The position numbers and the translations under genes were made by a program. From NCBI GenBank assembly GCA_964035545.1, contig CAXIUT010000291.1, positions 1 through 64,000 of the forward strand: a stretch of 64,000 nucleotides of DNA, written 5' to 3'. Source of the DNA: Bugula neritina (taxonomy: Eukaryota; Animalia; Bryozoa). The stretch's first letter is position 1. The number at the start of each line of letters is the position of its first letter. Below are positions 2,581 to 43,180 of this stretch, piece by piece. The notes beneath the pieces were generated by a model. That model worked only from the letters and a program-made list of their open reading frames with translations, was not told the origin of the DNA and did not search any database.

Positions 2581-3132
2581 TTACCATGAGTAGCGTGTGC
2601 TGACCGGGGCGTGTTTGCAGTTGTTCAGGGGTTGGGTTTTGCTGTTGTCGCACCAGGCCCCTTTTAATTGGTGGCAAGTGTATCCGGTGGGCAGCTCATC
2701 GCCCGGCGTAAAGGTCTGGTTACCGAAAATGCACTCCAGTTTTAACTGAAGTTCAATAGATTCGTAATCAGTTTGACCCGTAGGAAGGTCACGGTCGAAC
2801 CAAGGTGTACTTCCACCTTGCCAGTGCCATCTGACTTTCATGTTGGCACAGCTGTTTTGGGGTTCGGCAAATCTGTTCTGGCACATGGCCCCGGTGCTCA
2901 GGCAGTGGTATGCCTTAGGTAAATTTAAGCCTGGATCATCTGACCTGTAAATGCCTTTATATTTACCTGAGGTGACTTCGCACTCGCCGACTAAATTGTG
3001 TTCGTGGCTCTCCCAGTCGCCGGAGCCACCCGGTAGATCACTATTTAATATGGGTGTTTCCCCAGCTATCAGGTTGGCAGTGATAAGCATTGCGATGGTG
3101 AGGAGTAAGGTTTTATGTTTAAAAGCCATCAT
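2581..3132 (-). CDS. Secreted Cys-rich protein with two mucin/CILP WxxW(CysD)-like repeats
   Basis: Signal peptide; TPILNSDLPGGSGDWE and TPWFDRDLPTGQTDYE motifs; paralog of 4180-4725. Confidence 0.7.
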   Translation of the reverse strand: MMAFKHKTLLLTIAMLITANLIAGETPILNSDLPGGSGDWESHEHNLVGECEVTSGKYKGIYRSDDPGLNLPKAYHCLSTGAMCQNRFAEPQNSCANMKVRWHWQGGSTPWFDRDLPTGQTDYESIELQLKLECIFGNQTFTPGDELPTGYTCHQLKGAWCDNSKTQPLNNCKHAPVSTRYSW

Positions 3133-4037
3133 TTGCTAATCTTTAACAGGTCTTGAGTCAGGCTATTTAACTGGTAGTTACCGGCTATTTGCCCGCTTGG
3201 CTCCCGAATGATCAACTGGTTGCCTGCCGGATCAAAACTCCAGCGACAGGTTTTGTGCTGATGGGCGTCGTTTGGTTCCAGGGAAAGAAACTGGCACTGG
3301 CTGTTCTCGTAAAAAGAGAGGGTTCTGCGGAAGTGAGCTGGTGGGAAAGTTTTGCTGCCTGCTTTGCGCCAGGCTAGCGTAGGTTCTTCATCTTCCTCAT
3401 GAGAATGTACCCAGGTTTGGTTGATGAATTTCAGGCTATCAGAGGTAGGGCGGCCTATGGTGCAGGGGATAAGGCTTACTGTATCAAGCTGTATGCCGAA
3501 GCCGCCGCTGGTATCGCGTAGCTGGCTGAATTCGATGGTTAGGTTGTGTGTATCAGGGCATAAAATATAACTGTATTCCTGCCAGTCTGCTGCGGTTGTG
3601 ATGATGGAATGGTTAGCTGTTCCGCATGTTGCTGCTGAGTGGTTTATTAGTTTTAGGTCAAATATATTGTGTTGTTCTCTATGGAATCTGGCCCAAAATT
3701 TGAGTAAATAATTTTTTCCGGGCTGAGTTTGTATAGTCTGTGCGAGTCTGTATCCTTCGGAAGAGGCGAGTTGCAGGATGTTGTTGCCGGAGTGTGGGTA
3801 GTTAGCAATTACCTGCCCCTTTGGGCCGCCGGAGACTTTCCAGCCCGGTATGTTGTAAGTTTTAGTGAAGCGAACGCCAAATGTATCAGAATTTAGTTTT
3901 ATGTCTTCGAAGCTGCCATTGGTGATTAGGTTTTGGGTGTTGATGGGGTTGCAGTTGTCTTGTGCGTTAGTGGCGTAGGTGTTCTGAGCGATGGTTAAGG
4001 TAGTAAAGAGTAGTAGGATGAGCCGAAATATGTTCAT
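3129..4037 (-). CDS. Secreted protein with CBM-like (DUF642/CBM4-9-type) jelly-roll domain
   Basis: Signal peptide; NLITNGSFE...IPGW...LAQTIQTQPGKNYLLKF...LDTVSL. Confidence 0.65.
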   Translation of the reverse strand: MNIFRLILLLFTTLTIAQNTYATNAQDNCNPINTQNLITNGSFEDIKLNSDTFGVRFTKTYNIPGWKVSGGPKGQVIANYPHSGNNILQLASSEGYRLAQTIQTQPGKNYLLKFWARFHREQHNIFDLKLINHSAATCGTANHSIITTAADWQEYSYILCPDTHNLTIEFSQLRDTSGGFGIQLDTVSLIPCTIGRPTSDSLKFINQTWVHSHEEDEEPTLAWRKAGSKTFPPAHFRRTLSFYENSQCQFLSLEPNDAHQHKTCRWSFDPAGNQLIIREPSGQIAGNYQLNSLTQDLLKISK

Positions 4038-4179
4038 AACACGATAAATTTAGTACTGTTTCCTGAATTAGTCTGTAAGAATGTTTGTCGATTGTGGTGC
4101 TGGAAGGCCACCTTCTGTGGTTGAAAGTGGCTTGATTGGTGAGTTGGACTGGAGGGTTAGCTCCATATCTACATCGCCG

Positions 4180-4725
4180 TTACCAAAAGTACCTGACCCT
4201 TACCGGTCGGTTTCGGCAGCTTCTTCTCGGTTGAGTCTGTTTGTTTACACACCAGGCTCCTCGCATTTTATTACAGGTATAGCCTGCTGGAATGTTATTG
4301 CTGGTAGGAGTGAATTTATTGCTGCTAACTCCCGGTGGGCCAAAATAGCACTCTGTTCTTAGCTGATGTTCAATGGTTTCATAATCGCCATTGCCGCTTG
4401 GGCGGTCACGATCAAACCATGGTGTTGCACCTCCCCGCCATGTCCATCTGACTTTCATATTTTTACAACCACCTCGGGTTCTGTTGTTATCGCACCAGCC
4501 TCCACGTGCTTTTTTGCAGGTGTATCCGGCGGGTAAGGATTGGCCTGGTCTATAAACAGTGCCTCCGATGTTGCACTCTACGTTTAAATAGCGCTCGTTG
4601 TTTTCCCAGTCGCCTGAGCCACCGGGCCTGTCTGAATTGAATATGGGGGTTTGGCCTGCTGTTGCAGTACTTGCAAAACCAATTAACAATGTGACTAATA
4701 ATAGCTTATTAAGATTTTTTAACAT
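4180..4725 (-). CDS. Secreted Cys-rich protein with two WxxW(CysD)-like repeats
   Basis: Signal peptide; FNSDRPGGSGDWE, WFDRDRPSGNGDYET, GAWCVNKQTQPRRSCRN..VRVRYFW; RBS AAGGAG. Confidence 0.75.
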   Translation of the reverse strand: MLKNLNKLLLVTLLIGFASTATAGQTPIFNSDRPGGSGDWENNERYLNVECNIGGTVYRPGQSLPAGYTCKKARGGWCDNNRTRGGCKNMKVRWTWRGGATPWFDRDRPSGNGDYETIEHQLRTECYFGPPGVSSNKFTPTSNNIPAGYTCNKMRGAWCVNKQTQPRRSCRNRPVRVRYFW

Positions 4726-4825: not shown

Positions 4826-5509
4826 TTAATCCCAGCAGTTAGCAGGTTGGTTGTTGTTTTTCACCCAAAAGCGAGTTCTTTTATTACTATTATTTGGGTA
4901 GTTGTGTTTCAGCATTTTGCGTTTGTTATTATTATTCCATTGGTGAAACCTCGCATGGAAAGCCCAGCCACCTGACCTGGCGTTAGCATGGTTCCAGTTT
5001 CCACCAAAATGTTGATTAGCGCCCATGCCAGGCATCCATTTCCCCATATGATGTTCAGCCATGCGCCATCCATTGCCACAAATGTTATCAGCAGTGGCAG
5101 GGCTAGTTAAAGCTGTCCCTACGATTGGCGTAGTTAGTTTTATTTTTTGATCAACCCAACCCGAATAGAATTCTTTGGGCATGGCAGCACTCCCTGTGTT
5201 GACTACATAGCGTGGTCGGGGTTTGCTGTTACCTCCTACGCATAATATTGGTAAAGATTCGGTACAACTTGTTTCTCCTTGGTAGGCATTGCAAAAAGTT
5301 TTATTGCCTGTTGGTGATTTTGTCTCGCTGTTGCAACCTACATTAACTATTTTCTTTTGGTAGTTATTTGCAGGGCTGGAGAAGGTTTTGGCTCTGAAAC
5401 CCCAAGTCATACCATTACCACCCGCAGCCATTACCGGTGCACTAATAAATGCCAATGCCAAGCTGATCGCACAAAGATTGCGGCCTAAAATTATAGTCTT
5501 GCTTTTCAT
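4826..5509 (-). CDS. Secreted Cys/Trp-rich protein (GMTW...CxxYxGxTSC...GWRxAE...GGW...RFWV...NCW family)
   Basis: Start reassigned to ATG 5509 (GAGGT RBS); signal peptide; homologous to 13333-13902. Confidence 0.7.
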   Translation of the reverse strand: MKSKTIILGRNLCAISLALAFISAPVMAAGGNGMTWGFRAKTFSSPANNYQKKIVNVGCNSETKSPTGNKTFCNAYQGETSCTESLPILCVGGNSKPRPRYVVNTGSAAMPKEFYSGWVDQKIKLTTPIVGTALTSPATADNICGNGWRMAEHHMGKWMPGMGANQHFGGNWNHANARSGGWAFHARFHQWNNNNKRKMLKHNYPNNSNKRTRFWVKNNNQPANCWD

Positions 5510-5597
5510 GAGTAAATTACCTCGTGGTTGTTTGAAAATAAGGTTGTTTTTTTTGTTTTGTGTTACCATTTATATCAAAATAAACTTATGCGTTTAT

Positions 5598-5644
5598 GTA
5601 TTGATGCGACAATTTTTCAGGAAAATGCATCTAGATGACAAAAG
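5598..5644. promoter_or_regulatory. Conserved tandem direct-repeat motif, copy A
   Basis: GTATTGATGCGACAA and GCATCTAGATGACAA at a 29-bp period; same arrangement at 8878 and 14799. Confidence 0.55.
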
Positions 5645-5814
5645 CCTTTTTTAAATTTTTTCTGGGTATCAACAATTGATTTTTTTGGAGTTAATGGTGG
5701 GTTTTTAAAGGTCAGTAGGCAGAAGTTGAGTTTATAAAGATGGCTATCCGTAATAAAAAATAGGATCGAATATGTGTTGTCCATCCGATCCAAAAAAATA
5801 TTTGTGACTCAGCA

Positions 5815-6327
5815 TTATTGGTTTCGAACCAAGCGAACGTGGCGTTTTGCACTCTTTGTGTTAAAGTTATAGTAACCCGCTCCAAAATTCACAACCCAGG
5901 CAGCATGAGGCCAGTAAGCTGAGGTTGATGATGACCAATAATGGCCTGTGACAATATTGTTGGGAAATGCTGTTAAATTTAGCGAAGGGCCAATGCATTG
6001 GTGTTCAACGATAGAAGCCAGTTCTTTAATATTAGGCAGCCGCCAATTACCCCCGGCGCTGGCTGCTAAATCCAGCGCTTCCTTCCAGTTGTATATCGGC
6101 GGGGAAGCAGTACAGGTTAAAGTTGTGTCATTCCAACTTTGGCCTTCGGCGCACCGTTTCCAGATTAAACCGGTTTTGGTGTCTTTCACCGTACCATTAT
6201 TTTTACCAATCAGATGCCCTGTTGTCGCGGCGATAGTGTTGGTATTACAGGTCTGTGCATATGCATTAAACGATAACAACAGCAGGCTAACTGCCGTCAG
6301 TATGGTCAGTTTAAATTTGGTATTCAT
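5815..6327 (-). CDS. DUF1566 (Lcl C-terminal, C-type-lectin-like) secreted protein
   Basis: GTVKDTKTGLIWKRC, WRLPNIKEL, YWSSS, HVRLVR. Confidence 0.9.
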   Translation of the reverse strand: MNTKFKLTILTAVSLLLLSFNAYAQTCNTNTIAATTGHLIGKNNGTVKDTKTGLIWKRCAEGQSWNDTTLTCTASPPIYNWKEALDLAASAGGNWRLPNIKELASIVEHQCIGPSLNLTAFPNNIVTGHYWSSSTSAYWPHAAWVVNFGAGYYNFNTKSAKRHVRLVRNQ

Positions 6328-6347
6328 AATTGATCTCCACTGAAATG

Positions 6348-7493
6348 TTAATTGCCACGTACCAAACGGACCGGACGTGGGGTATTTTTGTTATTTGATG
6401 GCCCTGTGCCCGTGTTAAAGGTAACGCCCCATATCTGTACGGCATTGCCGATATAAGGTGATGAAGTCAGGTATAAAGTTGAAACCGTGTTGGGGAAATA
6501 TTTGACATCAATAGCCGGATTAAACCTATCGTAATGCACAATAGACTGGAGTTCTTTCTGGGTTGGTAAGCGCCAGTTATTTGCGCCACACAGACCATTA
6601 GCATTTACCGCCTGAACATAAGCAGCAGTGTCACAATGACTCCCAACACAGTTTCCACCGTTTTGTGTGCCGGGAGTGCCGCCATTGATTGCAGGGTTGG
6701 ATTCGTGCCATGTGTATGTCCACTTTCTATCATGCAAGCCGCCATCTTTGGTTTTAGTTTCCCAAATCAAACCAGTGACTTTGTCCTTTACACACGACCA
6801 TTTGGCTGCGTTTCTGGGTAATGCAGCGCCATCTGCTGAGACTTTTGTGAAGGCAAAACCTGCATGACCGTTGTTGTTGTTACCATTGCTTTTATCGCGA
6901 CCATGAGTTGCATCTTGTTTTGGAGGAATCGGGTCGCCTTGTGCATCATTTGCGTTGGAGGTGCAGGTTAGGTCGTTATTGTGGGCTAGGGTGGCGCTGC
7001 CATAGGCATAGTCGCCGCAGGTGATGATGCCTGTGTCATTGAGTTTATTGGTTGCAGCAGCTGGAACTTTGGCAACAACCTTGTACGTCTTATTTGCACT
7101 AAAGTTGCTTTTGTTGAGGTTGCTGTTTGAAGCGGGAAATGCCCTAACTTGCCATTTAATGGTATCGCCCAATGACAAGGGAAATGGAGATGGGCCTTGC
7201 CATGTGGTTGGATGTGAAGTGCAAGTGATGGCTCCGCTTGTAGTGCAAATAGAGCCTGATGACAATAAGGAGCTATTAAAAACGTTACTGCCTTTCTTGA
7301 CACGAATCTTGTAGCTAACAGCACCCTGCACAGCATTCCAAGTGAAAGCAGGCTGTGTCACAGTGCCATTACCTTGCGGTGATATGGTGTCTGGTTTATC
7401 AAGTCTGGCGCTATATGCAGTGTTAGTAGAAAGCAAAAAAACAAGCATTATTAATGGAGTTAATAATTTTGATGAAAAGTATGTAGTAGTCAT
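6348..7493 (-). CDS. Secreted FN3-like + DUF1566 protein
   Basis: LNDTGI..QDATHGRD..CVKDKVTGLIWE..WRLPTQKEL..PVRLVR; start probably MTTTY at 7493 (ORF track gives 7571). Confidence 0.85.
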   Translation of the reverse strand: MTTTYFSSKLLTPLIMLVFLLSTNTAYSARLDKPDTISPQGNGTVTQPAFTWNAVQGAVSYKIRVKKGSNVFNSSLLSSGSICTTSGAITCTSHPTTWQGPSPFPLSLGDTIKWQVRAFPASNSNLNKSNFSANKTYKVVAKVPAAATNKLNDTGIITCGDYAYGSATLAHNNDLTCTSNANDAQGDPIPPKQDATHGRDKSNGNNNNGHAGFAFTKVSADGAALPRNAAKWSCVKDKVTGLIWETKTKDGGLHDRKWTYTWHESNPAINGGTPGTQNGGNCVGSHCDTAAYVQAVNANGLCGANNWRLPTQKELQSIVHYDRFNPAIDVKYFPNTVSTLYLTSSPYIGNAVQIWGVTFNTGTGPSNNKNTPRPVRLVRGN

Positions 7494-7560
7494 TTTTCTA
7501 CCTTTATGATGGTTTTTTAATGAATTAATAAGCTTTGATTTTGTCTTTAGATTAGTGTAT

Positions 7561-7830
7561 CTAATATACAACAGGATCCCAAATGGAACGATATCCTATC
7601 CTTGGTCTTTTAATTCTTGATTTTGAGGTGGAGTTACCTGGGATTCTTTTGGGCTTGATGTGCGGATGTTCATGTTTTGAGTTAGTGGTTTCTTTTGTTT
7701 TTGATTTTTCAATGTCGTCAAGTTTAATATCTCCAAAGCCACCTTTCATCCCAGGAGGAGGCCCGGCAGTTAGCTGAATAGGGGTTGCGCTCATAATTAG
7801 AAGGCATATAAAAGCTATTTTAATATTCAT
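7561..7830 (-). CDS. Small secreted basic protein
   Basis: Signal-like N-terminus; GGAG RBS; co-oriented with neighbours. Confidence 0.5.
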   Translation of the reverse strand: MNIKIAFICLLIMSATPIQLTAGPPPGMKGGFGDIKLDDIEKSKTKETTNSKHEHPHIKPKRIPGNSTSKSRIKRPRIGYRSIWDPVVY

Positions 7831-7884
7831 AATATTCTCCGTTCGTGAATAGTTAATTTTTTTCCTACTGTGCTTTTTGAGGCT

Positions 7885-8715
7885 TTAACTGTCGTGCTGT
7901 AGTTGTCTTGGTGTTTGACTGGTTGGTGCAGGTCTAATTACTCTGCTTCTGTTTCTAGGGCCATCACGTACTATTCTTTGCAAGGCTTGTTTGACAGGTA
8001 CTGACTGTTGCCTGTGCATTGACGCATTTGGTTCATGTTTAGTTGCTCCCTCTTTAAGACAGCAGTATCGCCGATATAAATGTGCTACCCGGATGTCAGT
8101 ATCTTCGGCAATAACAAATGTGTATCTACCGTCTTGGACATTACTGGCGCTGATTGGACGCCACCACCATGTCCAGGTTGGGCCAACTGCTGGTGGATCT
8201 ATAGGCGCTGAAGTCATTGTTTGACCATTATTAAAATCCATAAAAATGTCATCAGTTGCGTTATCACCGTTTGGGCCATAGGGTGGGGGATTGCTATTAC
8301 GTAATTCAGCAGCTATTCTTGCATCTTGCAAAATGCAACATTTTCTTCTTGGAGGGCGAGATGTGTTAAAAGTATGCCCAAATATTTGGTTAACATAATG
8401 CTTATTATCATTTTGCGCGTTAAAATTTCTGATGCCAAGCGTTGATGGCGGGTTGCTAAATAAATTAGCAATGATAGGATCCATATCACTTAAGTCAGGG
8501 TTGGCTGGCCCGTATGTTGTCATTTTATCCCAGTGTTCATCAAAGTAGTGCCTGTCACACGGCGTCATGGGGGCTTTTCCACGAGCATTAGGAGGAGGCA
8601 TTAATTTCCTAATTTCGTTTGGATTTACTTCAGCTGCATAGGTTGGAAAAGCATTAAAATTAATACCTAAAATTGCGGCCATGAGTCCAGTTTTTAAATA
8701 GGTTTGCATAGTCAT
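7885..8715 (-). CDS. Secreted Cys-containing hypothetical protein
   Basis: Signal peptide; AAGGAG RBS; FGHTF...CC...EDTD...YCC. Confidence 0.7.
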   Translation of the reverse strand: MTMQTYLKTGLMAAILGINFNAFPTYAAEVNPNEIRKLMPPPNARGKAPMTPCDRHYFDEHWDKMTTYGPANPDLSDMDPIIANLFSNPPSTLGIRNFNAQNDNKHYVNQIFGHTFNTSRPPRRKCCILQDARIAAELRNSNPPPYGPNGDNATDDIFMDFNNGQTMTSAPIDPPAVGPTWTWWWRPISASNVQDGRYTFVIAEDTDIRVAHLYRRYCCLKEGATKHEPNASMHRQQSVPVKQALQRIVRDGPRNRSRVIRPAPTSQTPRQLQHDS

Positions 8716-8724
8716 TCTCCTTCA

Positions 8725-8772
8725 TTAATTCCAGCAGCTAGCATTGATTGTGTTATTTTTCACCCAATATGG
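8725..8772 (-). pseudogene. Relic 3' end of a third GMTW...NCW-family gene
   Basis: Reads PYWVKNNTINASCWN* versus RFWVKNNNQPANCWD* at 4826; preceded by an in-frame stop. Confidence 0.55.
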
Positions 8773-8877
8773 CTAATAGGTATAGCCTTTTGTGCGATAG
8801 GCTATTCGGAATAAACCAGGGGGTTCTTATCTCACATTTATACTATAAATTATATTGTATATTGGGTTAATTTGAAT

Positions 8878-8924
8878 GCATCAATACGACAATTTTCAGT
8901 GGATTTGCACCTATATGCCAAAAA
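8878..8924. promoter_or_regulatory. Conserved tandem direct-repeat motif, copy B
   Basis: GCATCAATACGACAA and GCACCTATATGCCAA at a 29-bp period. Confidence 0.55.
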
Positions 8925-9070
8925 TACTATTTTTATTTATGGATGAGTTTTTTAGGCTTTATGCGAAGTAAGCTTGAAATGTTGTCCGTGGTCTTGGTGA
9001 TTCAGTATCGAAAGCCTGCCGTGGATAATCAGATAGTTTTCTGGGTAAGTACAAAAAAAGTAAGCCAGTA

Positions 9071-10226
9071 AGTACCGATGTAGAAGTTTTCAGAGATTAG
9101 TGGTGGTATAATGATCGGCACTATTTTACCGACATTCTGACCCCAACTAATGAAATTTGTCTCTCGTCTCAGTGCAGAAGTTAAGCTGACTTTGAGTGAA
9201 GCACAGCAGCATCACCCATCCTCCCGCACGCGTCAACGTGCTCATGCCATACAGCTCAGTAACAAAAGTTATACACTGTCACAATTAGCGGATGTGTTTA
9301 GTGTACGTAGCCATACCATCAGCCAGTGGATTGATGCCTGGGAAGCCTCGGGAGTGGTTGGCTTGTTTGACCTGCCGAGGAGTGGGCGACCGGCGACTTT
9401 AACCGCTGATGAAGTCGAGCGTTTTCGGCATTATCTTGATAAGAATCCGCATCAGCCCAAGAGCGCTATCGCTCTGTTGGAAGCAGAGACGAATAAGACT
9501 GCCAGTGATGACACCTACAAACGCTGTTTGAAAAAAATTTTACCGTTGGAAACGACTACGGACTTCCAGCAAGGAGCAACGTGACGAAGAGACCTTCCGT
9601 AAAGACCAACAGGTGATGATCTATCTACAAGAGAAGGAAGACGCGGGTGAGATTTGCTTGCGCTACTTTGATGAAGCTGGCTTTAGCCTCACCCCCAGCG
9701 TCCCTTATGGATGGCAAAAGGTGGGAGAAACTTGTCGTATCCCGTCTCAAAAGAGCAAACGTCAGAATGTACTCGGATTTATGGGCCGTCAGGGTGAGTG
9801 GTTTTATCAGGTTAAAGAAGGCTCAGTGACCACAGAGACTGTGATTGAAGCTTTCGATGCATTCTCGCAGAAATACTACGAAGAGGAGTTTTTGAAAACG
9901 GGCAAGCTGTGTTTTGTGGCCATTGATAATGCATCCATGCATACCAGTGCTGCCTTCAGGGCACGAATGGAAGACTGGCTCTTGCGTGGTGTCATACCAC
10001 GTTACCTTCCGACCTATTCACCGGAATTGAATTTAATCGAAATTTTGTGGCGGAAGATAAAGTACGAATGGCTACCTTTGCAGGCATTCAGAGACACTAT
10101 CCACTTCAAATATTGGTTGAACAAAATTCTTGAATCGATAGGTGATGAATATCAAATTAATTTTGCTCAAACGGCAAAGTGAGCATTATACGGCCACGAA
10201 ATTGCGAAAACTTTTGCGGAGGTACT
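9071..10226 (+). mobile_element. IS630-family element, type 1, copy 1 (1156 bp)
   Basis: orfA 9150-9584 (HTH) and orfB to 10182 (DDE, YSPELNLIE) joined at an A7 run; ends AGTACC/GGTACT; TA duplication. Confidence 0.95.
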
Positions 10227-10246
10227 TAACTCTGATTATCTACTAG

Positions 10247-11978
10247 GTGGCCGTCCGAGAACGGATCCTCTAACCACCCCACTTTTAGTCAGATCACTTT
10301 TTTAGCAGCACCATCCATCCTGCGACCAGGAGGCCGCTTATTTTCGCCCAAATAGCGATCAATTAACTGCTATTGCAGGCATTTCCGGCCCTTTTAGCCT
10401 CATTATCTGGCTTGTGCCACCCAATTTCCAGATTCCGGACGCACTAATCCTGTCACCGCCGCTTTCACCATTTTTTTCAGGTTGTGTGCCGCGCAGACCA
10501 GCGAAAATTCACCCGCCACTTTTTCTGCACCCCGCAGACTAAACGCCCGGAATCCACCGTTCTTAATATGACCAAACACTGGCTCAACAATCACCTTGCG
10601 TTGTTTGTAAATCGCTTTGGCTTCGCCAGTTGCCATCTGTTCACGCATTTGCTGACGTATCACTTCCTGTCCATCAGAATTGATGGTGCGGGCTTCACCG
10701 GTCTTTGAGCGGCAACAACGTTGATGATACGGGCAGCTCTGGCAGGTGGCTGCTTCACCCTGATAAACCCGCTTACCGTCCTTACCCTGTGTTTTCAAGG
10801 GGAGAATCTGGTCAGCAGGGCAGCGAAAGCTATCACTGGCTTCATCGTAAATAAAATCAGCTTTGACCAGCTTGCGATCAGAATTTGCCAGTGCATCCGC
10901 TACGCTCTGTTCACCCCGGTCAACCGCGACATAAGCCTCAACCTCTGCTGCTTCCAGCGCTTCAAGGTTATCGCCCGAATAATAGCCGTTGTCCAGACTC
11001 ATCTTCTCAGGCAACTCGCCACTTGTATCTTTCAGGGCTGCCAGTGCCGGTTCAACTTCCTGCTTGTCGTTGGCATTTTGGCTGACATGCTGCCCAACAA
11101 TAATTTGCTGCTTACTGTCCACGCTAATCTGACCATTGTAGCAATAATCAAAATCACCCTTCTTACCCATGATACGGGCATCTTCATCCGCAAAGCTGAT
11201 CTGCTTTTTATCGTCAATCACCTTGCCCGGATGTAGCGCTTCTTCCCGTTTTTCCAGAGCGGCTTTTGCCGCTTTGATCGTCGCCAGCCGCTGCTGTTTA
11301 AAGGCCAGTTCTTTAGGCAGTTCATCACCCCGGTCAGTGCCATGCGCCGCGTCTTCTTCCTGATCACAGGCTGTGCCCTGTTTGATCAGCTCATCAATCG
11401 CAGCGGTTAACGCTGCCTCTTTCGCTTTCAGGTGTTTATAACTCATCGCTTTATGCTTTGAGCTGTTCGCTTTGAATTTGGAACCATCCAGACTAACATG
11501 ACCCAGTGAAGCCAGCTTCATCTCCAGGGCCAGCTTCACTGTCTGCTTAAAACAGGCGTGAAAAAACTCAGCATTATCCTTGCGAAAGTCGCTGAGCACC
11601 CGGAAGTTCGGGCAGTTCCGGCCTGCAATGTACATAAACGATAAATCTTCGTTGCACCGTTTTTCCAACTGACGCGAACTGAACACGCCGTGGCTATAGC
11701 CATAAATCAGAATGCTGGTGATTTGGCGGGGATGGTAAGCATGTTGGCCCTTCGGGCTGTATTTCGCTTCAATGCTACTGGTATCCAGTTGCTGAAAAAG
11801 ATCATGGAAAAGAAAGCAGTCGTGATCGGAGGGCAGCAAGTCAAAAACATTGCCCGGAAATAAGGCACGCTGGTGGAGGTCTGCCGGTTCAGATTTAAAG
11901 GGGATAGACATCTATGTTGAGGTCGTCAGTCAGACAAAATTTGATTTTAGCAAAAGTTGGGTGTTGTCGGACAGCCAC
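10247..11978 (-). mobile_element. IS1182-family element (transposase 10403-11911)
   Basis: SSRQLE, LDGSKFKANSS, RKVIVEPVFGHIK motifs; IRs GTGGCCGTCCGA/TCGGACAGCCAC; flanking CTAG duplication. Confidence 0.9.
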
Positions 11979-11981
11979 CTA

Positions 11982-13309
11982 GTACCTCACCTTGAAACTA
12001 TCATGGATAACCCCCATCTCTCTATCATCTGAGAGTTATGGTAGCTAATTCGATGTCCCGTCCTGTTTCTGTAGTTGAACTGAGTTCTGGCCAGCAAGCA
12101 CTGCTGGAAAGTTTTGTGAAGAGTGGAAAAACGGCTTACAGTTTATTCCAACGTAGTCAGGTCGTTTTGTTGGCGGCTTTGGGAAACAGCAATAAAGCGA
12201 TCAGCCAACAAGTTAGCTTGAATGAAAATGCTGTGGGGCTGTGGCGTCGTCGCTGGGTTGAAGGCCATTCAAAACTGTCGCGTTGGGAAGATAAACCCCG
12301 GTTGCTGGGTCAGGGTATTCGTCACCTACTCAGTGACCTTCCCCGCAGTGGCAGCCCACCCACTTTTACTGCTGAGCAGGTTTGTCGGATTATCGCCCTG
12401 GCTTGCGAGAAACCGCCGACTCACCTAAGCCACTGGACACAGGCCGAATTGGCCCGGATGGCGGTAGAACGCGGCATTGTTAATAGCATCTCGAAAAGCA
12501 GTATCGAGCGTTTTTTAAAATCAGGCTGATTTAAAGCCCCACCGTATTCAGTACTGGCTTAATCAGGGTGTTGAAGATAGCCCCGAATTTCGCCAGGCTG
12601 TTCATGCTATCTGTAAACTGTACCATCAGGCTGAAGCCCTCCATGAACAAGGAATACACCTGGTGAGTACGGATGAGAAAACGGGTATGCAAGCGATTGA
12701 ACGTATCCATCCTGACCACCTGATGGAGTCCGGGCAACCGGAACGGCACGAGTTTGAATATACCCGGCATGGCACTCAATGCCTGATCGCTAATTTCGAA
12801 ATTGCGACCGGGCAAGTGATCGACTCAACCGTTGGTGATACCCGAACTGAAACTGATTTTGTCGCCCACATTAAGCGTACGGTTGGTACTGCGGCTAAGG
12901 ATCAGTGGATATTTGTAGTGGATCAGCTCAATACACACAAGTCAGCCGGATTGGTCGAGTACGTCGCGCAAGCCTGTCAGTTAAACCAGCCGCTGGGGGA
13001 AAAGGGGAAATCAGGTATTCTGAAAAGTATGGCATCAAGAATGGCCTTCCTGCAAGATGAAGCGCATCGCATTCGATTCGTATTCACGCCGAAGCATTGC
13101 TCCTGGCTCAATCAAGTGGAAATTTGGTTTGGCATTCTCAGTCGACGCTTACTCAGGCGAGGCAGCTTTACCTCACAGGAAAATCTTAAGCAAAGAGTGG
13201 AAGCCTTTATCGATTATTTCAACAAATACTTGGCTAAGCCTTTTCAATGGACTTACATCGGGAAGCCGCTGGTGGCATGATTATCAATCATATCTCCAAG
13301 GCGAGGTAC
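11982..13309 (+). mobile_element. IS630-family element, type 2, copy 1 (1328 bp)
   Basis: orfA 12038-12529 and orfB to 13280 (SWLNQVEIWF) joined near TTTTTTAAAATCAG; IR GTACCTC(A/G)CCTTG; inserted at CTAG. Confidence 0.95.
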
Positions 13310-13332
13310 TAGTTGTGGGGGGGGGGGTAAAT

Positions 13333-14487
13333 TCACTTAAGAGACTTGTTAGGACTCCAACAATTAGCACCCTGATTCTTGATATGAACCCAAAACCGCT
13401 CAGTTTTCAGCTTATCAAGCATTTCATCATCACCATCAAACCGAGCATTAAAATTCCACCCCCCACTACTATTAGCATCAGCCAAATTCCAAGGCGGCTC
13501 TGAATCAGCATGATAATTTTCCACACCCATCCCCTCAATCCAATGCCCATCATGAAACTCAGCAATCCGCCAGCCATTCCCACAAGCGCCATTAGCAGCC
13601 TCAAGACTCGTCAGCTGCTCCCCTCTGGTTCTAGGACTAAGCTTGATCGCCCTGGGCGACCAGCCCGCAGAACTTTCTTTACCCAGCTTCACAGAATATG
13701 CGGGTCGGGGAATATCCCCCGTTTCTTCCACACACAAAATATGACGCTCAGCAGCACAACTAGTCTCTCCTTTATAAGGGTCACACATACCGCCTTGCCC
13801 CGTTGCCCATTCCGTCACGCTATTGCAGCCAACCTGTACCAAATTAGCCGGGCCATCGGGAATAGTTTGAGCGCGAAAACCCCAGGTCATACCTTTTCTC
13901 ACCGGTGCGGGCGGTGGCGCAGAGCAACTAAAGCTTAAGTTAACTTTTTATCCAGTGATCTTTAGACCATTTAGCATAACGCTTGCCGTTCTCCCGAAGA
14001 GTGTCGCCACCAAAAACAACCGTGATTTTATCGTCTGAGAATGTGGACTTGGCATTAAGCCAGCTTGCTTCGGGGTTATTGGACTGGATGTACATTCCCG
14101 CTACTTTAGTTGTGCAGTTGCCATCGGTAGCTGTGGATTTATACCGTCAAAGTGTAAGGCCGCATCTACCCCGTAACCCGGTTGTTCGTCATCAAAACCA
14201 TGGTCGAAATCAATGCGTATTGTTGATTGTCCTACATCGATATTGAAGCGATGCGGTGTTGGGTTAGATGTCATCTGATCGTTGACCTGGGGCAGCTCTA
14301 TCGTATTGTTAACCGTGATCTGCCTCTTGGCGTTTGGAAGCATATAAACATCCATTTGATCGCCATGAAGTGATGCATTAGCACAGTTACAGGCAGACGC
14401 ACCAGGACTGGAAAGCAGGAATATTCCGGCTAAAATAGACTTTCTGCTAAAGCATATCCTGATGACTGGCACGGAGGTCTCCTGCAT
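13333..14487 (-). pseudogene. Secreted two-domain protein with C-terminal GMTW...NCW domain; two compensating frameshifts (~14127, ~13945)
   Basis: ORFs 14101-14487 and 13333-13902 share a frame; the intervening DGNCTTKVAGMY...KDHWIK reads openly in a shifted frame. Confidence 0.65.
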
Positions 14488-14798
14488 TAATCGGGGCGAA
14501 GATGAAAATAATGTCTACTATTAAATGGGGTGAATCCTGACTGCTTGATATGTGAGCTTAGTAGTAAAATGATTGGATTTAAATGTGAATTTTTCACAAA
14601 AGATATGTGAGGCGTACACTTTTTTTGTGACGATAATTCACTGATAATAAATGAGGTTAGCATAGCCAGCATGCCCCATTTAAGATGAATAATATTGATT
14701 AATGTTATGAGTAACCACTCGGTATGAGTGGAAAACCATGCTGTTAACTTAAAGCACATAAGCTATTTTTACTAAAATAAAACTATCTATGAATGCAT

Positions 14799-14845
14799 GC
14801 ATTAATACGCCAATCCTCATGAAAGTTGCACTTACATGCCAAAAA
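14799..14845. promoter_or_regulatory. Conserved tandem direct-repeat motif, copy C (overlaps the sensor kinase start codon)
   Basis: GCATTAATACGCCAA and GCACTTACATGCCAA at a 29-bp period. Confidence 0.55.
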
Positions 14846-17800
14846 TACTGTTTTTCTTACTGATCGCTTTTTTTTCAGAGACTTTATATGCAGCAGATCT
14901 GCGCTTTTCCCATTTGGGTATAAGTACCTCCGCAAAAGTTTTCGCAATTTCGTGGCCGTATAATGCTCACTTTGCCGTTTGAGCAAAATTAATTTGATAT
15001 TCATCACCTATCGATTCAAGAATTTTGTTCAACCAATATTTGAAGTGGATAGTGTCTCTGAATGCCTGCAAAGGTAGCCATTCGTACTTTATCTTCCGCC
15101 ACAAAATTTCGATTAAATTCAATTCCGGTGAATAGGTCGGAAGGTAACGTGGTATGACACCACGCAAGAGCCAGTCTTCCATTCGTGCCCTGAAGGCAGC
15201 ACTGGTATGCATGGATGCATTATCAATGGCCACAAAACACAGCTTGCCCGTTTTCAAAAACTCCTCTTCGTAGTATTTCTGCGAGAATGCATCGAAAGCT
15301 TCAATCACAGTCTCTGTGGTCACTGAGCCTTCTTTAACCTGATAAAACCACTCACCCTGACGGCCCATAAATCCGAGTACATTCTGACGTTTGCTCTTTT
15401 GAGACGGGATACGACAAGTTTCTCCCACCTTTTGCCATCCATAAGGGACGCTGGGGGTGAGGCTAAAGCCAGCTTCATCAAAGTAGCGCAAGCAAATCTC
15501 ACCCGCGTCTTCCTTCTCTTGTAGATAGATCATCACCTGTTGGTCTTTACGGAAGGTCTCTTCGTCACGTTGCTCCTTGCTGGAAGTCCGTAGTCGTTTC
15601 CAACGGTAAAATTTTTTTCAAACAGCGTTTGTAGGTGTCATCACTGGCAGTCTTATTCGTCTCTGCTTCCAACAGAGCGATAGCGCTCTTGGGCTGATGC
15701 GGATTCTTATCAAGATAATGCCGAAAACGCTCGACTTCATCAGCGGTTAAAGTCGCCGGTCGCCCACTCCTCGGCAGGTCAAACAAGCCAACCACTCCCG
15801 AGGCTTCCCAGGCATCAATCCACTGGCTGATGGTATGGCTACGTACACTAAACACATCCGCTAATTGTGACAGTGTATAACTTTTGTTACTGAGCTGTAT
15901 GGCATGAGCACGTTGACGCGTGCGGGAGGATGGGTGATGCTGCTGTGCTTCACTCAAAGTCAGCTTAACTTCTGCACTGAGACGAGAGACAAATTTCATT
16001 AGTTGGGGTCAGAATGTCGGTAAAATAGTGCCGATCATTATACCACCACTAATCTCTGAAAACTTCTACATCGGTACTTACAGCAGGGCGGTATCGATGC
16101 GCTAGCTCAGGACAAGCATGGCTTTCTCTGGATAGGTACAAGAAATGGATTGGTGCGCTACGATGGTAATGCCATAAAAACCTACCGTAATATTCCTGAT
16201 AAACCTGAAACCCTGCAAGATGATGCCATCATCGCCCTGCACTATGGTAAAGACGGGCGATTATGGGTCGGCACAGCGGAAAATGGAGCGAGTTACTATA
16301 ACTACACAACGGGGCAATTCACCCGAATTGACACCAAGGCGGCTGGTAAGCATGTCTACCGTTTCTACGATGATGAATCGGGGGAGGGTATTTATGCGCA
16401 AACGACAGCTGGTCTGTTTTTTATCGACCTGAGCAATAACGCCAAACTTGTTCTGAGTGCAGAATATTCAGAGTTAGTATTGGGCCTGTATGTCAGTGCA
16501 TCCGGTACGCACGCTATTCTCGAAACAGGGCAAAAGCTCACCTTAGGCCAGAACCCTGAACGACCAGAAATATACCAAATTATCCCGAAAACGCTGATGC
16601 AATACTGGCAGGCTACGTTCTGCCCACACCTGATTAGAGAGGCAATACAGGTAGGCGGTGGTTCTGGCCTGTTCTATTGTTTGCAGGGCAACAAGGTCAT
16701 CGACACCAAATTGAATGAGGTCTTATTTCAGGCCGGTATTAATCCCGGCCAGCTGGTGGTCTATGACCTGACGGAAGATGATAACGGTGTCATCTGGATA
16801 AATAGTGGTCGGGGGTTGCTGCGGATTACGGGCGATCTGGTCTCTAAGATTAAAAGCCCCGGTTTTGATGGCCAGAGCCTGTCCGGCAATAAGCTATCAG
16901 TTCTGCTGGCCGGGCAGAAGAATACCTTGTTTGTTGGCACGCAGGAGCGGGGGCTAAGTACACTCACGCTGGATGACTCGGGTATCAGTTATTTCAACAC
17001 TCTCTATACGGCGTCTCCGGCTGAAAATAAAATTGTCCCTATTGCGCCCGCGAAACCTTGTCAGACTGACGATGACAATGGACAAGCCATGACCTGGAGT
17101 ACGCTGAAAGACGCGGATGGTGATCTATGGGTAGGGAATAACGCAGGTTTGACCCGCAGGCCAGTCGGTTCAGCTACTTTTCAACACTACCACCAGCTGG
17201 GTAGTAAAGCGTTAGTCGATGTATGTGCAGTGCGGGCGTTGGCAGAGGCGGATGGCAAAATCTGGGTCGGTACACCGACAGGGTTGCTCGCCTATGATAA
17301 GCGTAGCCAGGCTGTTACCCACTATACATCTCAGCGGGGTGATGAGGGCGAGCATCATAAAGCGCTTACTGCGATGCGATCAGTGTTCTGTTGCATGATA
17401 ATAAGCGTGGCAGCTTGTGGGTAGGTACTGAGCAGTCTGGGCTGAACCGGATTGATTTGAACAGCGGTAAAATGCGTCATTTTTCTTCTATGGCTAACAA
17501 CCCGGCCATGCTGTCACATGCACAGGTACATAGCCTGTATCTGGATCGGAATAACCGCCTGTGGGTAGGGACGGGGGCAGGTCTGTCGTTATGGAGTGAG
17601 GATAGTGATTCCTTTAAAACCATTCGGGCTTCTGATGAACCCGCAACATTGAGTGGTGCTGTGGTTCATACGATCTACCAGTCCGATGAGGATACCTTAT
17701 GGGCCGGTACGAATAACGGCTTGAATCGGATTAAGATTAGTCAGTTCACTGTGGAAAAACGCTGGTTTGAACGTGATGGGTTACCACATCCGGCAATCTA

Positions 17801-19163
17801 TCAATTTGTCGCTGATGATTATGGTCACTATTGGCTGAGTACGGCTAATGGTTTAAGCCGCTTTGATCCGGCACAGGATAGTTTCAGCAATTATTACCCG
17901 CAGCATGAAACTCAGGCTGATACGGTTAATGTCAATGCCTGGTACCAGGAGAAACAGGGTTTGCTCTACCTGAGTGGGACAGATGGATTTAGTGTTATCA
18001 ATCCGCAAGCATTTGCTACGACTGAGAAATCATATCCTCCGCTTATTACCCGGGTTGATAGCTTAGATCGGCAGGGTGACGAGTCAAAGCTGGAGACGCA
18101 CCCTGCGTTAACTCAGGTGCTGCCCTTAACCGGGGAAGAAGTGCCGACCAAGTTGACGCGTAATGTCCGCCTCAACTTTACCTACCCGTTTTTTGGTGAT
18201 AGCGATTTAGTAAAAAGCCAGTATCGTCTGTTGCCTGCTGTTGATGTTTGGTCAAAGACTTCTCCCGGTTCGCATTATGTGGACTACACCGGCCTGAAAC
18301 CAGGCGCTTATGAATTTCAGCTCAAAGCGAATCTGGCTGGCAATCAGATCAGCAGCTTCCGCTTTGAGATTGAACCTTATTTTTGGGAAACGCCCTGGTT
18401 TCGGGCGCTGGCGTTGATCGCACTGTTAATATCAACCGTATTGTTCACGATTTACTGCTACCGGGTTTGGGGCAAGTTTTCCGCCGACAAAATGACACGT
18501 CAGCATTACCGCATTGTTGAACACGAACTGCGCCCGCATCTGCATGAGGCGAATAAGCAGTTGCAATCGATGCTGCAATCGCCTGGTTTGGCGATTAAAG
18601 ACAAGCAAACCATTCGCTTTTCCATTATGCCGTTAATTGGCAAATCCATTGACTTTATTGCAGAACTACGGACGTTGGTGGATTTACGCCGTACCGTGAA
18701 ACAACCGAAGCAGCTTTATATGCTGGAAGATGTACTGGACGAAGTGCTGCTGTTTTTCCGGGATCAACAGCAGCGTATTGTGTTGGGTGAGGTGGAAGAT
18801 ATTAATGTTCTGACACATCAGGACGCAGTGTATTTACTGGTGAAAAACCTCATCTCTAATGCGATTAAGTATTCGCCGGGCGGTGAGTCGGTACAGGTAA
18901 ATGTGTACTCTGAGGGCAAGACGCTGGTCGTCGAGTGTAATGATCAGGGTATCGGTATTAGTAAAGATAAGCGCAAGGTTATTTATGAGCCGTATAAGCG
19001 CTTTGCCGGGGAGTATAAAAATATTAATGGTCAGGGTATCGGTTTAGCGATTGTACGCTTTGTTGTTCATACTTATCAGGGCAGTATCACTATCACAGAC
19101 AATCAGCCACAGGGGAGTTGTTTCATTGTCCGTCTAAAGGGAGTAGTCGTAGATGAATCATAA
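14836..19163 (+). pseudogene. Beta-propeller/Y_Y_Y periplasmic sensor histidine kinase (HTCS-like), interrupted by IS630 and frameshifted near 17370
   Basis: Removing the IS restores MPKILFFLLIAFFSETLYAADLRFSHLGIQQGGIDALAQDKHGFLWIGT; repeated LWVGT blades, YTGLKPGAYEF, TM, HELR, NAIKYS, DQGIGI, GQGIGL. Confidence 0.85.
14923..16078 (-). mobile_element. IS630-family element, type 1, copy 2
   Basis: Same proteins and same length as 9071-10226, inverted; TA duplication at 14921 and 16079. Confidence 0.95.
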
Positions 19164-19938
19164 AACCAACGGAACTGTCGTATTGATTGAAGACGAGCCA
19201 GCTTCAATTCAGCGTTTGTTGCCCCTGTTGCGTAAGTACCATGAATGCTATTTTGCTACTAATGGCGAGGGCGGGATAAATCTGTATCGTAAGGTCATGG
19301 CTAAGAACCCGCTGGTGATTTGCGATGTGAATCTGCCGGATATGCTGGGGTTTGATGTTTGCCGGGCGATTAAGGCCCACAATCCGGCGACTTATGTCAT
19401 GTTATTGACCGCTTATAATGACAGTGAGCTGAGAATGGCGGGGCTGAACGCTTATGCGGATAGTTATGTCGATAAGGTGCTGAGCGATGAGGAGATTCGG
19501 CTCAAAGTCCGGAATGCCTTTAATACGGTACAGCTCAATCATGCGGTAGAACCGCCGGTTATAACAGAGAAGTCTTCGTGCCGGTGCAAACTGGAAAATT
19601 TTGAAACTTTGGTGCGGGATCGTTTGCTGGATTATTATAAACAGCCGTTTTTTGAGCGTGATAAGCACGGGTGTAATCTGGAAATCATGGCGGAATTTGT
19701 GCATCAGTCTCCACGTACCTTTCAGCGCAAGATGCATGCACAGGTCGGTATGCCATTTAAGACCTTTCAATTAAAAGTTCGCTTGCAAAGAAGCCGGGAA
19801 TTATTGGTGGATGAATTCAGCGTGACCCAGATTGCGGATATTCTGGAATTTTCCAGTCCATCGCACTTTTCACGTGCCTTTCGCGATGAGTATGGGATGA
19901 CGCCGGGTAAGTATAAAAAGCACCAGTTGACGGTGTAA
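19153..19938 (+). CDS. Response regulator, REC + AraC-type HTH
   Basis: IEDE...CDVNLPDMLG...LLTA...K; C-terminal SVTQIADILEFSSPSHFSRAFRDEYGMTPGKY; overlaps kinase stop. Confidence 0.9.
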   Translation: MNHKTNGTVVLIEDEPASIQRLLPLLRKYHECYFATNGEGGINLYRKVMAKNPLVICDVNLPDMLGFDVCRAIKAHNPATYVMLLTAYNDSELRMAGLNAYADSYVDKVLSDEEIRLKVRNAFNTVQLNHAVEPPVITEKSSCRCKLENFETLVRDRLLDYYKQPFFERDKHGCNLEIMAEFVHQSPRTFQRKMHAQVGMPFKTFQLKVRLQRSRELLVDEFSVTQIADILEFSSPSHFSRAFRDEYGMTPGKYKKHQLTV

Positions 19939-21901: not shown

Positions 21902-22066
21902 GGGTGACAGAATGCTGTCACCCGATTGTCACCTGTCACCTGTGTTGCGTCACTAACTGACAGCTTAACAAGCCTTGTTGTCTTTTCTCTGAAAAGTGCT
22001 TTTTATTTAAATTTTATGTTTATCAGTGGGTTATGGGTTTTTTGCGAAGTTGGCACGCGGGTTGCA
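21902..22066 (+). promoter_or_regulatory. Sigma54 promoter with upstream enhancer-like TGTCAC/GTGACA sites and IHF-like site
   Basis: TGGCACGCGGGTTGCA at 22051-22066 (GG-N10-GC); palindrome GGGTGACAG-N4-CTGTCACCC at 21902-21923; TATCAGTGGGTTA at 22021. Confidence 0.8.
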
Positions 22067-22076
22067 ATAAGGTAAA

Positions 22077-22305
22077 TAACAAAAAAACGATAACAACAAA
22101 ATAAAATAACAACAATAATAAAATAAAGAAATAATAATAAAAACAAAACCATAAGCCCCGAGGCTGAGTAATACAATCCCCTGTTTACGTGTTACGAAGC
22201 CTGTTTCAGTCCTCCCCCTTACCCCGGGGGGAGTACACTGAAAAACATCCCTAATCCCCTTTGTTGTAAGCCCTTAATCAGCCTCGTTTCGCGGGGCTGC
22301 TTTTT
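22077..22305 (+). ncRNA. Putative CrcZ-like A-rich small RNA
   Basis: No ORF; ~75 nt of AANAANAA/ARN repeats, internal hairpin, intrinsic terminator; starts at the predicted +1 of the sigma54 promoter. Confidence 0.6.
22279..22305 (+). terminator. Intrinsic terminator
   Basis: CAGCCTCG-TTTCG-CGGGGCTG followed by CTTTTT. Confidence 0.7.
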
Positions 22306-42600: not shown

Positions 42601-43180
42601 CCCAGATAGTCTTGAGGTAGTCCAGATCCCAGCTCAGTTCTTCCAGCTCACGATCTACACCCGCTGTTCGCACGATTGCACCCATGCCATCCGGGATGTC
42701 GAGGTCAGACAGGGTTTGCTTGATATGCTGGCGATCTTCGCCTTCGATGCGGCGCGAGACGCCACCGGCGCGTGGATTATTGGGCATTAACACCAGATAA
42801 CGCCCGGCGAGGCTGATGTAAGTAGTTAGGGCTGCGCCCTTATTGCCGCGCTCTTCCTTATCGACCTGAAGCAGGATTTCCTGGCCTTCGCGTAGTACAT
42901 CCTTAATGCTTGGACGACTGTTGCCATCGACTTTAGCGTCGGGGTGATAGCATTCGCGTGCTACCTCGCGGAAAGACAAAAAGCCATGACGTTGTGCGCC
43001 ATAGTTTACGAAGGCGGCTTCGAGGCTTGGCTCGATACGGGTGATAACCCCTTTATAGATATTGGCCTTTTTTTGCGCCCGAAATGGATGTTCTATGTCC
43101 AAATCATAAAGTCGTTGACCGTCGACCATTGCAACACGAATTTCTTCCGCCTGTGTCGCATTAATTAAAATTCTTTTCAT
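39641..43180 (-). CDS. rne: Ribonuclease E
   Basis: [28 protein letters not shown]; long disordered C-terminal region. Confidence 0.97.

Follow-up and report, generated by a model that had tools for sequence, protein, structure and literature searches.

The window analysed here is a stretch of 64,000 nucleotides (nt) from the assembly of the bryozoan Bugula neritina (GCA_964035545.1, contig CAXIUT010000291.1), namely the first 64 kb of a 79,462-bp bacterial contig (C300) within a eukaryote assembly of 216 Mb and 321 contigs. Judged by its sequence, the contig is that of a Thiothrix-like, sulfur-bacterium-like organism inside an animal assembly; its TldD shows 84% identity to two genomes (G104 and G287) of a gammaproteobacterial family, for which 107 species representatives served as the comparison set. 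The window carries three copies of a 45-bp element composed of two 16-bp boxes (TGYAYYNANRYGMCAA) on either side of a 13-nt spacer, giving a period of 29 bp. The element sits in a low-GC accessory island; G+C content around it is 0.43–0.48 compared with 0.50–0.57 further along the contig, and the low-GC stretch holds four insertion sequence (IS) copies. The island also encodes a two-component system, consisting of a Reg_prop/Y_Y_Y sensor kinase and a response regulator with a receiver (REC) domain and an AraC-type helix-turn-helix (HTH) output (19153–19938), and the element is probably the operator of this system.

Copy A spans 5597–5641 (box 2, 5597–5612, TGTATTGATGCGACAA; 13-nt spacer; box 1, 5626–5641, TGCATCTAGATGACAA), copy B spans 8877–8921 (box 2, 8877–8892, TGCATCAATACGACAA; box 1, 8906–8921, TGCACCTATATGCCAA), and copy C spans 14798–14842 (box 2, 14798–14813, TGCATTAATACGCCAA; box 1, 14827–14842, TGCACTTACATGCCAA). 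As the first-pass annotation of this DNA had proposed, each copy lies upstream of a minus-strand unit for secreted proteins with N-terminal signal sequences: copy A is 88 bp from the gene at 4826–5509, copy B is 162 bp from the gene at 7885–8715, and copy C is 311 bp from the start (14487) of the pseudogene at 13333–14487, in the divergent region between this gene (minus strand) and the sensor gene (plus strand). The overlap of copy C with the kinase start codon, claimed in the same annotation, is likewise real, since ATG 14836 lies inside box 1 and opens MPKILFFLLIAFFSETLYAADLRFSHLG, although the gene is interrupted further on. The 5′ end of the sensor gene (14836–14920, plus strand; signal peptide, 28 codons) is severed from the remainder by an IS630 insertion; the signal peptide (MPKILFFLLIAFFSETLYA/ADLRFSHLG) reads across the insertion into the Reg_prop repeats at 16081, and the remainder (16081–19163, plus strand) contains Reg_prop repeats, Y_Y_Y and HATPase_c. 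The REC-AraC response regulator (19153–19938, plus strand, 261 amino acids (aa), Response_reg and HTH_18/HTH_AraC) is intact.

The three copies match the full 45-nt pattern with no mismatch, and the pattern did not occur in any of 100 dinucleotide-preserving shuffles, even when three mismatches were allowed, so that the arrangement first described, two boxes exactly 29 bp apart at three sites, stands. A single-box pattern gave seven matches where 1.5 were expected, and six of the seven are the six boxes themselves. In the whole 216-Mb assembly, the pair pattern is found at copies A, B and C only; with two mismatches allowed, the additional matches across the assembly all lie on host chromosomes and are no commoner than those of a reversed control pattern. 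Similarly, position weight matrix (PWM) scoring of box pairs on the 79-kb contig gives 42, 41 and 37 bits at the three sites and 15.5 bits at the next best. The chance matches to the pattern include long tandem arrays of a 29-bp unit (ATGACAACACATGTATACATAGTATCACC) on a host chromosome (G000 C3, 16.89–17.00 Mb), an unrelated host satellite; the host-chromosome loci that matched (L004–L030) were set aside.

An ortholog of the regulator occurs in one of the 107 family genomes, the metagenome-assembled genome G366 (source label Thiothrix nivea), on contig C94 (PDWJ01000659.1). There the sensor is one intact open reading frame (ORF) of 1042 aa from its ATG, 55–63% identical to the sensor of the window, and is followed by a regulator that is 71% identical to its counterpart. 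The G366 sensor ORF ends after HATPase_c and overlaps the regulator ORF; kinase and regulator are separate proteins in both species. The minus-strand neighbours of the pair encode a 368-aa protein, a 300-aa protein and then WxxW, DUF642 and WxxW proteins; the 368-aa gene is the ortholog of 13333–14487, and the 300-aa protein shows 35% identity to the product of 7885–8715. G366 carries two further copies of the element, again with the 29-bp period and with both boxes on one strand: copy D sits at the start codon of the sensor and precedes the 368-aa gene, and copy E precedes the 300-aa gene. The positions of C and D are orthologous, as are those of B and E, which indicates that the duplication is older than the split of the two species. 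A first, strict pattern had given background matches only in the 107 family genomes; the composite pattern of the five copies gave two matches in G366, none in the other 106 genomes and no control matches, and a PWM scan of both contigs (that of the window and that of G366) gave no further copies. Element and regulator thus co-occur in one of 107 genomes, a pattern that carries little weight, since the other genomes lack the island altogether. The regulatory genes common to both islands are the sensor and the regulator, and no DNA-binding regulator other than the REC-AraC protein is shared by them.

Within one copy, box 1 and box 2 are 56–75% identical. The parts TGCA (positions 1–4) and RYGMCAA (positions 10–16) are kept in nine of the ten boxes and lie one helical turn apart; the boxes are asymmetric and arranged as direct repeats. 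These are properties of AraC/XylS-type sites, namely asymmetric half-sites of about 16–18 bp with two conserved parts, and an AraC-family regulator is encoded alongside, in G366 as well as in the window. Across the five copies, box 2 averages 0.76 and box 1 averages 0.69 in pairwise identity compared with 0.42 for the spacer, in agreement with the earlier remark that the spacers diverge; the gene-side flank (22 nt) reaches 0.36 and the opposite flank (26 nt) 0.42. Per-column identity is 0.77 in box columns versus 0.46 outside (Mann–Whitney p = 2.7e-6), and the comparison of box columns with the spacer alone (0.42) gives p = 3e-4. Since the boxes had been defined on the copies of the window, the G366 pair D–E is the fairer test; there, box 2 is at 0.69 and box 1 at 0.71, whereas the spacer is at 0.38 and the flanks are at 0.32 and 0.46. 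Boxes no better conserved than their spacers had been named in advance as counter-evidence; the boxes are the better conserved part, and are so again in the G366 pair. The spacer measures 13 nt in all five copies despite offsetting indels within it between B and E, and in the comparison of C with D the element reaches about 75% identity within intergenic DNA most of which cannot be aligned.

Several other kinds of element were considered and set aside. A leader peptide or translation signal of a plus-strand ORF does not fit, since in copy E an ACG replaces the ATG and stops follow directly while the box is kept; the box is therefore not conserved as a start codon. An RNA element was dropped because the Rfam scan of all copies gave no match at E ≤ 0.1 and because direct rather than inverted repeats form no hairpin. 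The end of an IS or of a miniature inverted-repeat transposable element was also rejected: the identical IS630 arms do not reach the element, beginning 79 bp from copy C and 147 bp from copy B in opposite orientations, and copy A and both G366 copies have no neighbouring IS.

Four of the five copies have a TATAAW-like hexamer on the gene side at a distance of exactly 22 nt from box 2, while the intervening 22 nt are only 0.36 identical. On the minus strand, the predicted −10 hexamer is TATAAA at 5569–5574 for copy A and TATAAT at 8849–8854 for copy B; the same position reads TATAAA in copy E, TACAAA in copy D and TTAGTA in copy C (14770–14775). The hexamer adjoining box 2 is a poor −35 in all copies. 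For copy B, TTCAAA-16-TATAAT scores 10/12 in a consensus scan. If these hexamers are −10 elements, box 2 would extend from about −35 to −50 and box 1 from about −64 to −79, which, by position, would be an activator-dependent layout.

The history of the copies can be read from what follows them on the plus strand. In copies A and B an ATG stands at the same box position as in copy C and is followed by short dead ORFs that resemble the signal peptide of the sensor: a decayed stub at 8915–8971 (plus strand, MPKILFLFMDEFFRLYAK, then a stop) in copy B and another at 5635–5679 (plus strand, MTKAFFKFFLGINN, then a stop) in copy A. In addition, copies B and C align over 81 nt at 74%. The presence of decayed sensor stubs indicates that the copies arose by duplication, and the element copies are best described, from these remnants, as duplications of the sensor promoter together with a 5′ coding stub, the boxes having been kept afterwards. 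The idea of a duplication relic, which the first-pass annotation had raised as the alternative, therefore describes the origin of the copies correctly and fails as an explanation of why the boxes were selectively retained.

In the mechanism that we propose, one two-HTH AraC-type domain would read each 16-bp box, since a box of this size, with its TGCA and RYGMCAA parts one helical turn apart, is what such a domain covers, and two regulator molecules, presumably dimerised through their phosphorylated receiver domains, would occupy the two direct-repeat boxes. The proximal box 2, abutting the −35 region, would place the regulator so as to activate the three units for secreted Cys-rich or lectin-like proteins. 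Occupancy of box 1 in copy C, which covers the start codon of the sensor, could also dampen the sensor–regulator operon. The other copies would have come about when the promoter and sensor 5′ stub were duplicated, after which the stubs decayed and the boxes were retained. The receiver residues D14, D58, T86 and K108 of the regulator and both of its HTH helices are invariant among 12 orthologs (65–82% identity), and the invariant helices are consistent with a conserved DNA site; the orthologs include eleven at 65–82% identity (P0001–P0011), of which P0006 evidently comes from contig C94 of G366.

Several observations weigh against this assignment. The period of 29 bp corresponds to 2.8 helical turns and puts the boxes on different faces of the helix, and it is longer than the period of AraC and of predicted Bacteroides sites, which is roughly 21 bp. 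The five copies, from two species, are related by descent, so that the identity statistics given above are drawn from non-independent samples. The orthologous pair C–D has a conserved spacer too (0.69), which could reflect the ribosome-binding region of the sensor, and box 1 of copy D lacks 2 nt between TGCA and GCCAA, a change that a rigid two-part site would not accommodate. The hexamer at the −10 position of copy C is a poor one, and with the sensor inactivated in this genome, present-day function here is doubtful. We infer the binder from sequence, and likewise the sign of regulation, the transcription starts and autoregulation. The earlier proposal that the regulator at 19153 binds the boxes gains from the conservation of the pair at orthologous places and from this protein being the sole shared regulator, while the 29-bp period exceeds the approximately 21 bp that is typical.

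The same points bear on the other explanations. The element could be a real operator read by another protein, either a regulator encoded elsewhere or a repressor, with the two-component neighbourhood being incidental. The link between regulator and boxes is made only of co-location and co-occurrence, the 29-bp period is atypical for AraC-type sites (PMC3878776, PMC11983282), and regulators were surveyed in the islands, the rest of the bacterial genome being inseparable from the host assembly; all of this leaves room for another binder. We nevertheless regard it as unlikely, because the element is confined to the island in both species and has no match in the other family genomes, the sensor and regulator are the only regulatory genes that the two islands have in common, and one copy lies on the sensor's own start in both species. 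The possibility that the boxes are functionless leftovers of segmental duplications of the sensor 5′ region draws on the recognisable decayed stubs of the signal-peptide coding region in copies A, B and E, and on the 81-nt alignment of B and C. Such leftovers are quite improbable as a full account: conservation of the boxes far exceeds that of the spacer, of either flank and of the stubs; the spacer has kept its length although indels occurred within it; a −10 hexamer stands at a fixed distance; and the duplication predates the split of species whose sensors are 55–63% identical, by which time flanking neutral DNA had become unalignable.

Readings of the element as a promoter in itself fare worse. 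In a sigma-70 arrangement, the −35 would be supplied by box 1 (minus strand, TTGKCA) and the −10, after an 18-nt gap, by a purine-rich hexamer that closes the spacer and ends in AT, with box 2 as the transcript start; a consensus scan does give 9/12 for TTGTCA-18-AAAAAT in copy A and for TTGGCA-18-GAAAAT in copy B. However, 9/12 is the level expected from shuffles, the arrangement breaks in copy D through its 2-nt deletion, and it leaves unexplained why box 2 repeats box 1 (0.56–0.75 identity within copies), so this explanation is highly improbable. The boxes as sigma-54 (−24/−12) promoters can be credited with hardly any probability. TTGGCAT-N5-TGCA on the minus strand superficially resembles TGGCAC-N5-TTGCA, and the window does contain a canonical sigma-54 promoter at 22051–22066. 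Nevertheless, the GG-to-GC spacing of the boxes is one base short, copy A has GT rather than GG, none of the boxes comes within one mismatch of the consensus (only 22051–22066 matches exactly), tandem pairing at every site would be meaningless for a promoter, and no sigma-54 activator is encoded in the island; the spacing and the consensus search led to its rejection. The sigma-54 consensus at 22051–22066 is itself perfect (TGGCACGCGGGTTGCA) and lies just upstream of a weak CrcZ-like Rfam match (22106–22214; 23 bits, far below gathering).

An operator of the island's own two-component system would control a small set of genes. The first gene of unit A (4826–5509, minus strand) encodes a secreted Cys-rich protein of 227 aa without a Pfam family (protein A), which is a paralog of the C-terminal half of the 13333–14487 product. 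The rest of unit A (2581–4725, minus strand) comprises WxxW (4180–4725), DUF642/CBM-like (3129–4037) and WxxW (2581–3132) genes, all with orthologs in the G366 island. Unit B begins with a gene for a secreted protein of 276 aa, also without a Pfam family (protein B; 7885–8715, minus strand), whose product is the one related to the G366 protein encoded behind copy E, and continues (5815–7830, minus strand) with an 89-aa ORF (7561–7830) and Lcl_C (DUF1566) at 6348–7571 and 5815–6327. The gene behind copy C (13333–14487, minus strand) is the ortholog (46%) of the 368-aa lipoprotein-like gene of G366; about 55 of its middle codons are out of frame, with stops in frame, owing to two single-base shifts, and it appears to be a pseudogene or else to carry assembly indels. 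Proteins A and B have no sequence match in Pfam or the PDB, and in Atlas they fall in unnamed clusters only, with a weak DUF1554 lead. Among the island ORFs, where most of those of at least 80 aa were compared with Pfam, WxxW, DUF642/CBM_4_9, Lcl_C, DUF2007 and transposases were found, and no SusC/D and no glycoside hydrolases.

The divergent region between the sensor gene and its minus-strand neighbour contains a second conserved block (CATGCTRTTA...AAAGCACAT), at 14737–14762 in the window and at 15866–15899 of the G366 locus L129. It lies 40–65 bp from box 2 on the gene side and might be the minus-strand transcript start or the sensor's own promoter.

Mobile elements have left clear marks on the system. 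One IS630-family element (14921–16081, minus strand) is inserted at codon 29 of the sensor gene with a TA target duplication, and a second copy (9068–10228, plus strand) lies 147 bp upstream of copy B and is not part of the element. The two IS630 copies are 1161 bp each, 100% identical and inverted, with TA duplications, a 144-aa HTH ORF and a 189-aa DDE_3 ORF; recombination between them could invert the intervening 4.7 kb. A short inverted repeat, GATAATCAGA (9026–9035) and TCTGATTATC (10231–10240), flanks the IS630 copy at 9068–10228 and may mark the termini of an older element that the IS invaded. Between copies B and C there are also an IS5/IS1182-like transposase gene (10403–11911, 502 aa; DDE_Tnp_1_6, DUF772) and a second, different IS630-family element (12038–13280) split over two ORFs (163 and 205 aa). 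Two lesions disrupt the sensor in this genome: the IS630 insertion, and a tandem duplication of 5 bp (GCGAT GCGAT, near 17368–17377) that shifts the frame and splits the remainder into two ORFs (to 17424; from 17391). The GCGAT duplication is not a homopolymer and is therefore probably a real mutation rather than a sequencing error. The regulator and the units behind copies A and B are intact. With the sensor disrupted twice and one target a pseudogene, the circuit is probably no longer signal-responsive here, and it is probably decaying in this animal-associated strain.

The island itself has a narrow distribution. The sensor and protein A have no match in the closest relatives, G104 and G287, and a search of the genome contigs with the sensor gave only 20–26% identity over the full match, with some short segments higher. 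In a metagenome scan, the sensor alignment matched only the G366 contig PDWJ01000659.1, and protein A had no match. A regulator in G350 (40% identical) was dropped because its gene context is different, and a literature search on the system found nothing. The island is bordered in the window by DUF2007 and thioredoxin/DsbA-like genes, and in G366 it adjoins the isc operon (IscR, IscS, IscA-like, HscB, HscA; L129 9719–5127, corresponding to C94 29719–25127); the different bordering genes indicate that the island lies at different chromosomal places in the two species. Elsewhere in the window, two very long minus-strand ORFs are present, at 55126–63918 (2930 aa) and 39641–43180 (1179 aa).

If the assignment is true, it provides a defined operator and a small, clean regulon for the Reg_prop/Y_Y_Y sensor and REC-AraC regulator family, whose DNA sites have so far mostly been computational predictions in Bacteroides, and it extends the direct-repeat logic of the family to Gammaproteobacteria with a different spacing. 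The decayed stubs beside well-kept boxes form a natural experiment that sets binding-site selection against mere common descent, and the copies illustrate how a regulon grows by promoter duplication. The target proteins (WxxW, DUF642, Lcl_C and Cys-rich secreted), together with the IS-driven decay, are relevant to how a sulfur bacterium living in association with an animal appears to its host. A wider and more tentative picture is possible, in which a split kinase and REC-AraC pair outside Bacteroidota, with a 29-bp operator and a regulon grown by copying a promoter cassette, linked the perception of some ligand, possibly a glycan of the host, to a set of lectin-like proteins at the surface or secreted by an animal-associated relative of Thiothrix, and is now decaying. 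The element would be a familiar type of gene switch found in a new context, and current understanding is not overturned.

Three known systems can be compared. In YesM/YesN of Bacillus, a separate membrane kinase and a REC-AraC regulator are encoded side by side, as here, and the sensor domain differs from the Reg_prop beta-propellers and Y_Y_Y found here; we know of no defined YesM/YesN-type operator with which the boxes could be compared.

The operators of AraC at PBAD and RhaS at PrhaBAD in E. coli consist of a pair of half-sites about 17 bp long, and a domain with two HTH motifs reads each half-site (PMC11983282), as is proposed for the boxes here. In both E. coli systems the half-site nearer the promoter extends into the −35 box (PMC11983282); similarly, the proximal box here is predicted to reach the −35 region of a promoter with a weak −35, and one copy stands in the divergent region beside the regulator's own operon. 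In contrast, the half-sites are direct repeats separated by 4 bp for AraC and inverted repeats separated by 16 bp for RhaS (PMC11983282), whereas a gap of 13 bp separates the direct repeats described here, and control is predicted to act through phosphorylation of a receiver domain rather than through a sugar-binding dimerisation domain.

For the AraC-type hybrid two-component systems (HTCS) of Bacteroides, predicted operators have been reported to be direct repeats of two sites of about 14–16 bp with a non-conserved spacer and a mean period of 21 bp (Ravcheev et al. 2013, PMC3878776). Unlike these systems, the kinase and regulator described here are separate proteins rather than a single polypeptide in both species, the host is a gammaproteobacterium and not a member of Bacteroidota, and the sensor is only 22–26% identical to Bacteroidota proteins. 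The period is 29 bp (13-nt spacer) in all five copies compared with the mean of 21 bp, and in place of SusC/D polysaccharide-utilisation loci the targets comprise genes for small secreted proteins (Cys-rich, WxxW, DUF642 and Lcl_C). What the two have in common is the periplasmic Reg_prop/Y_Y_Y type of sensor with a REC and AraC-type HTH output, several target promoters that adjoin the regulator gene, and a direct repeat of approximately 16-bp sites with a non-conserved spacer upstream of neighbouring target operons.

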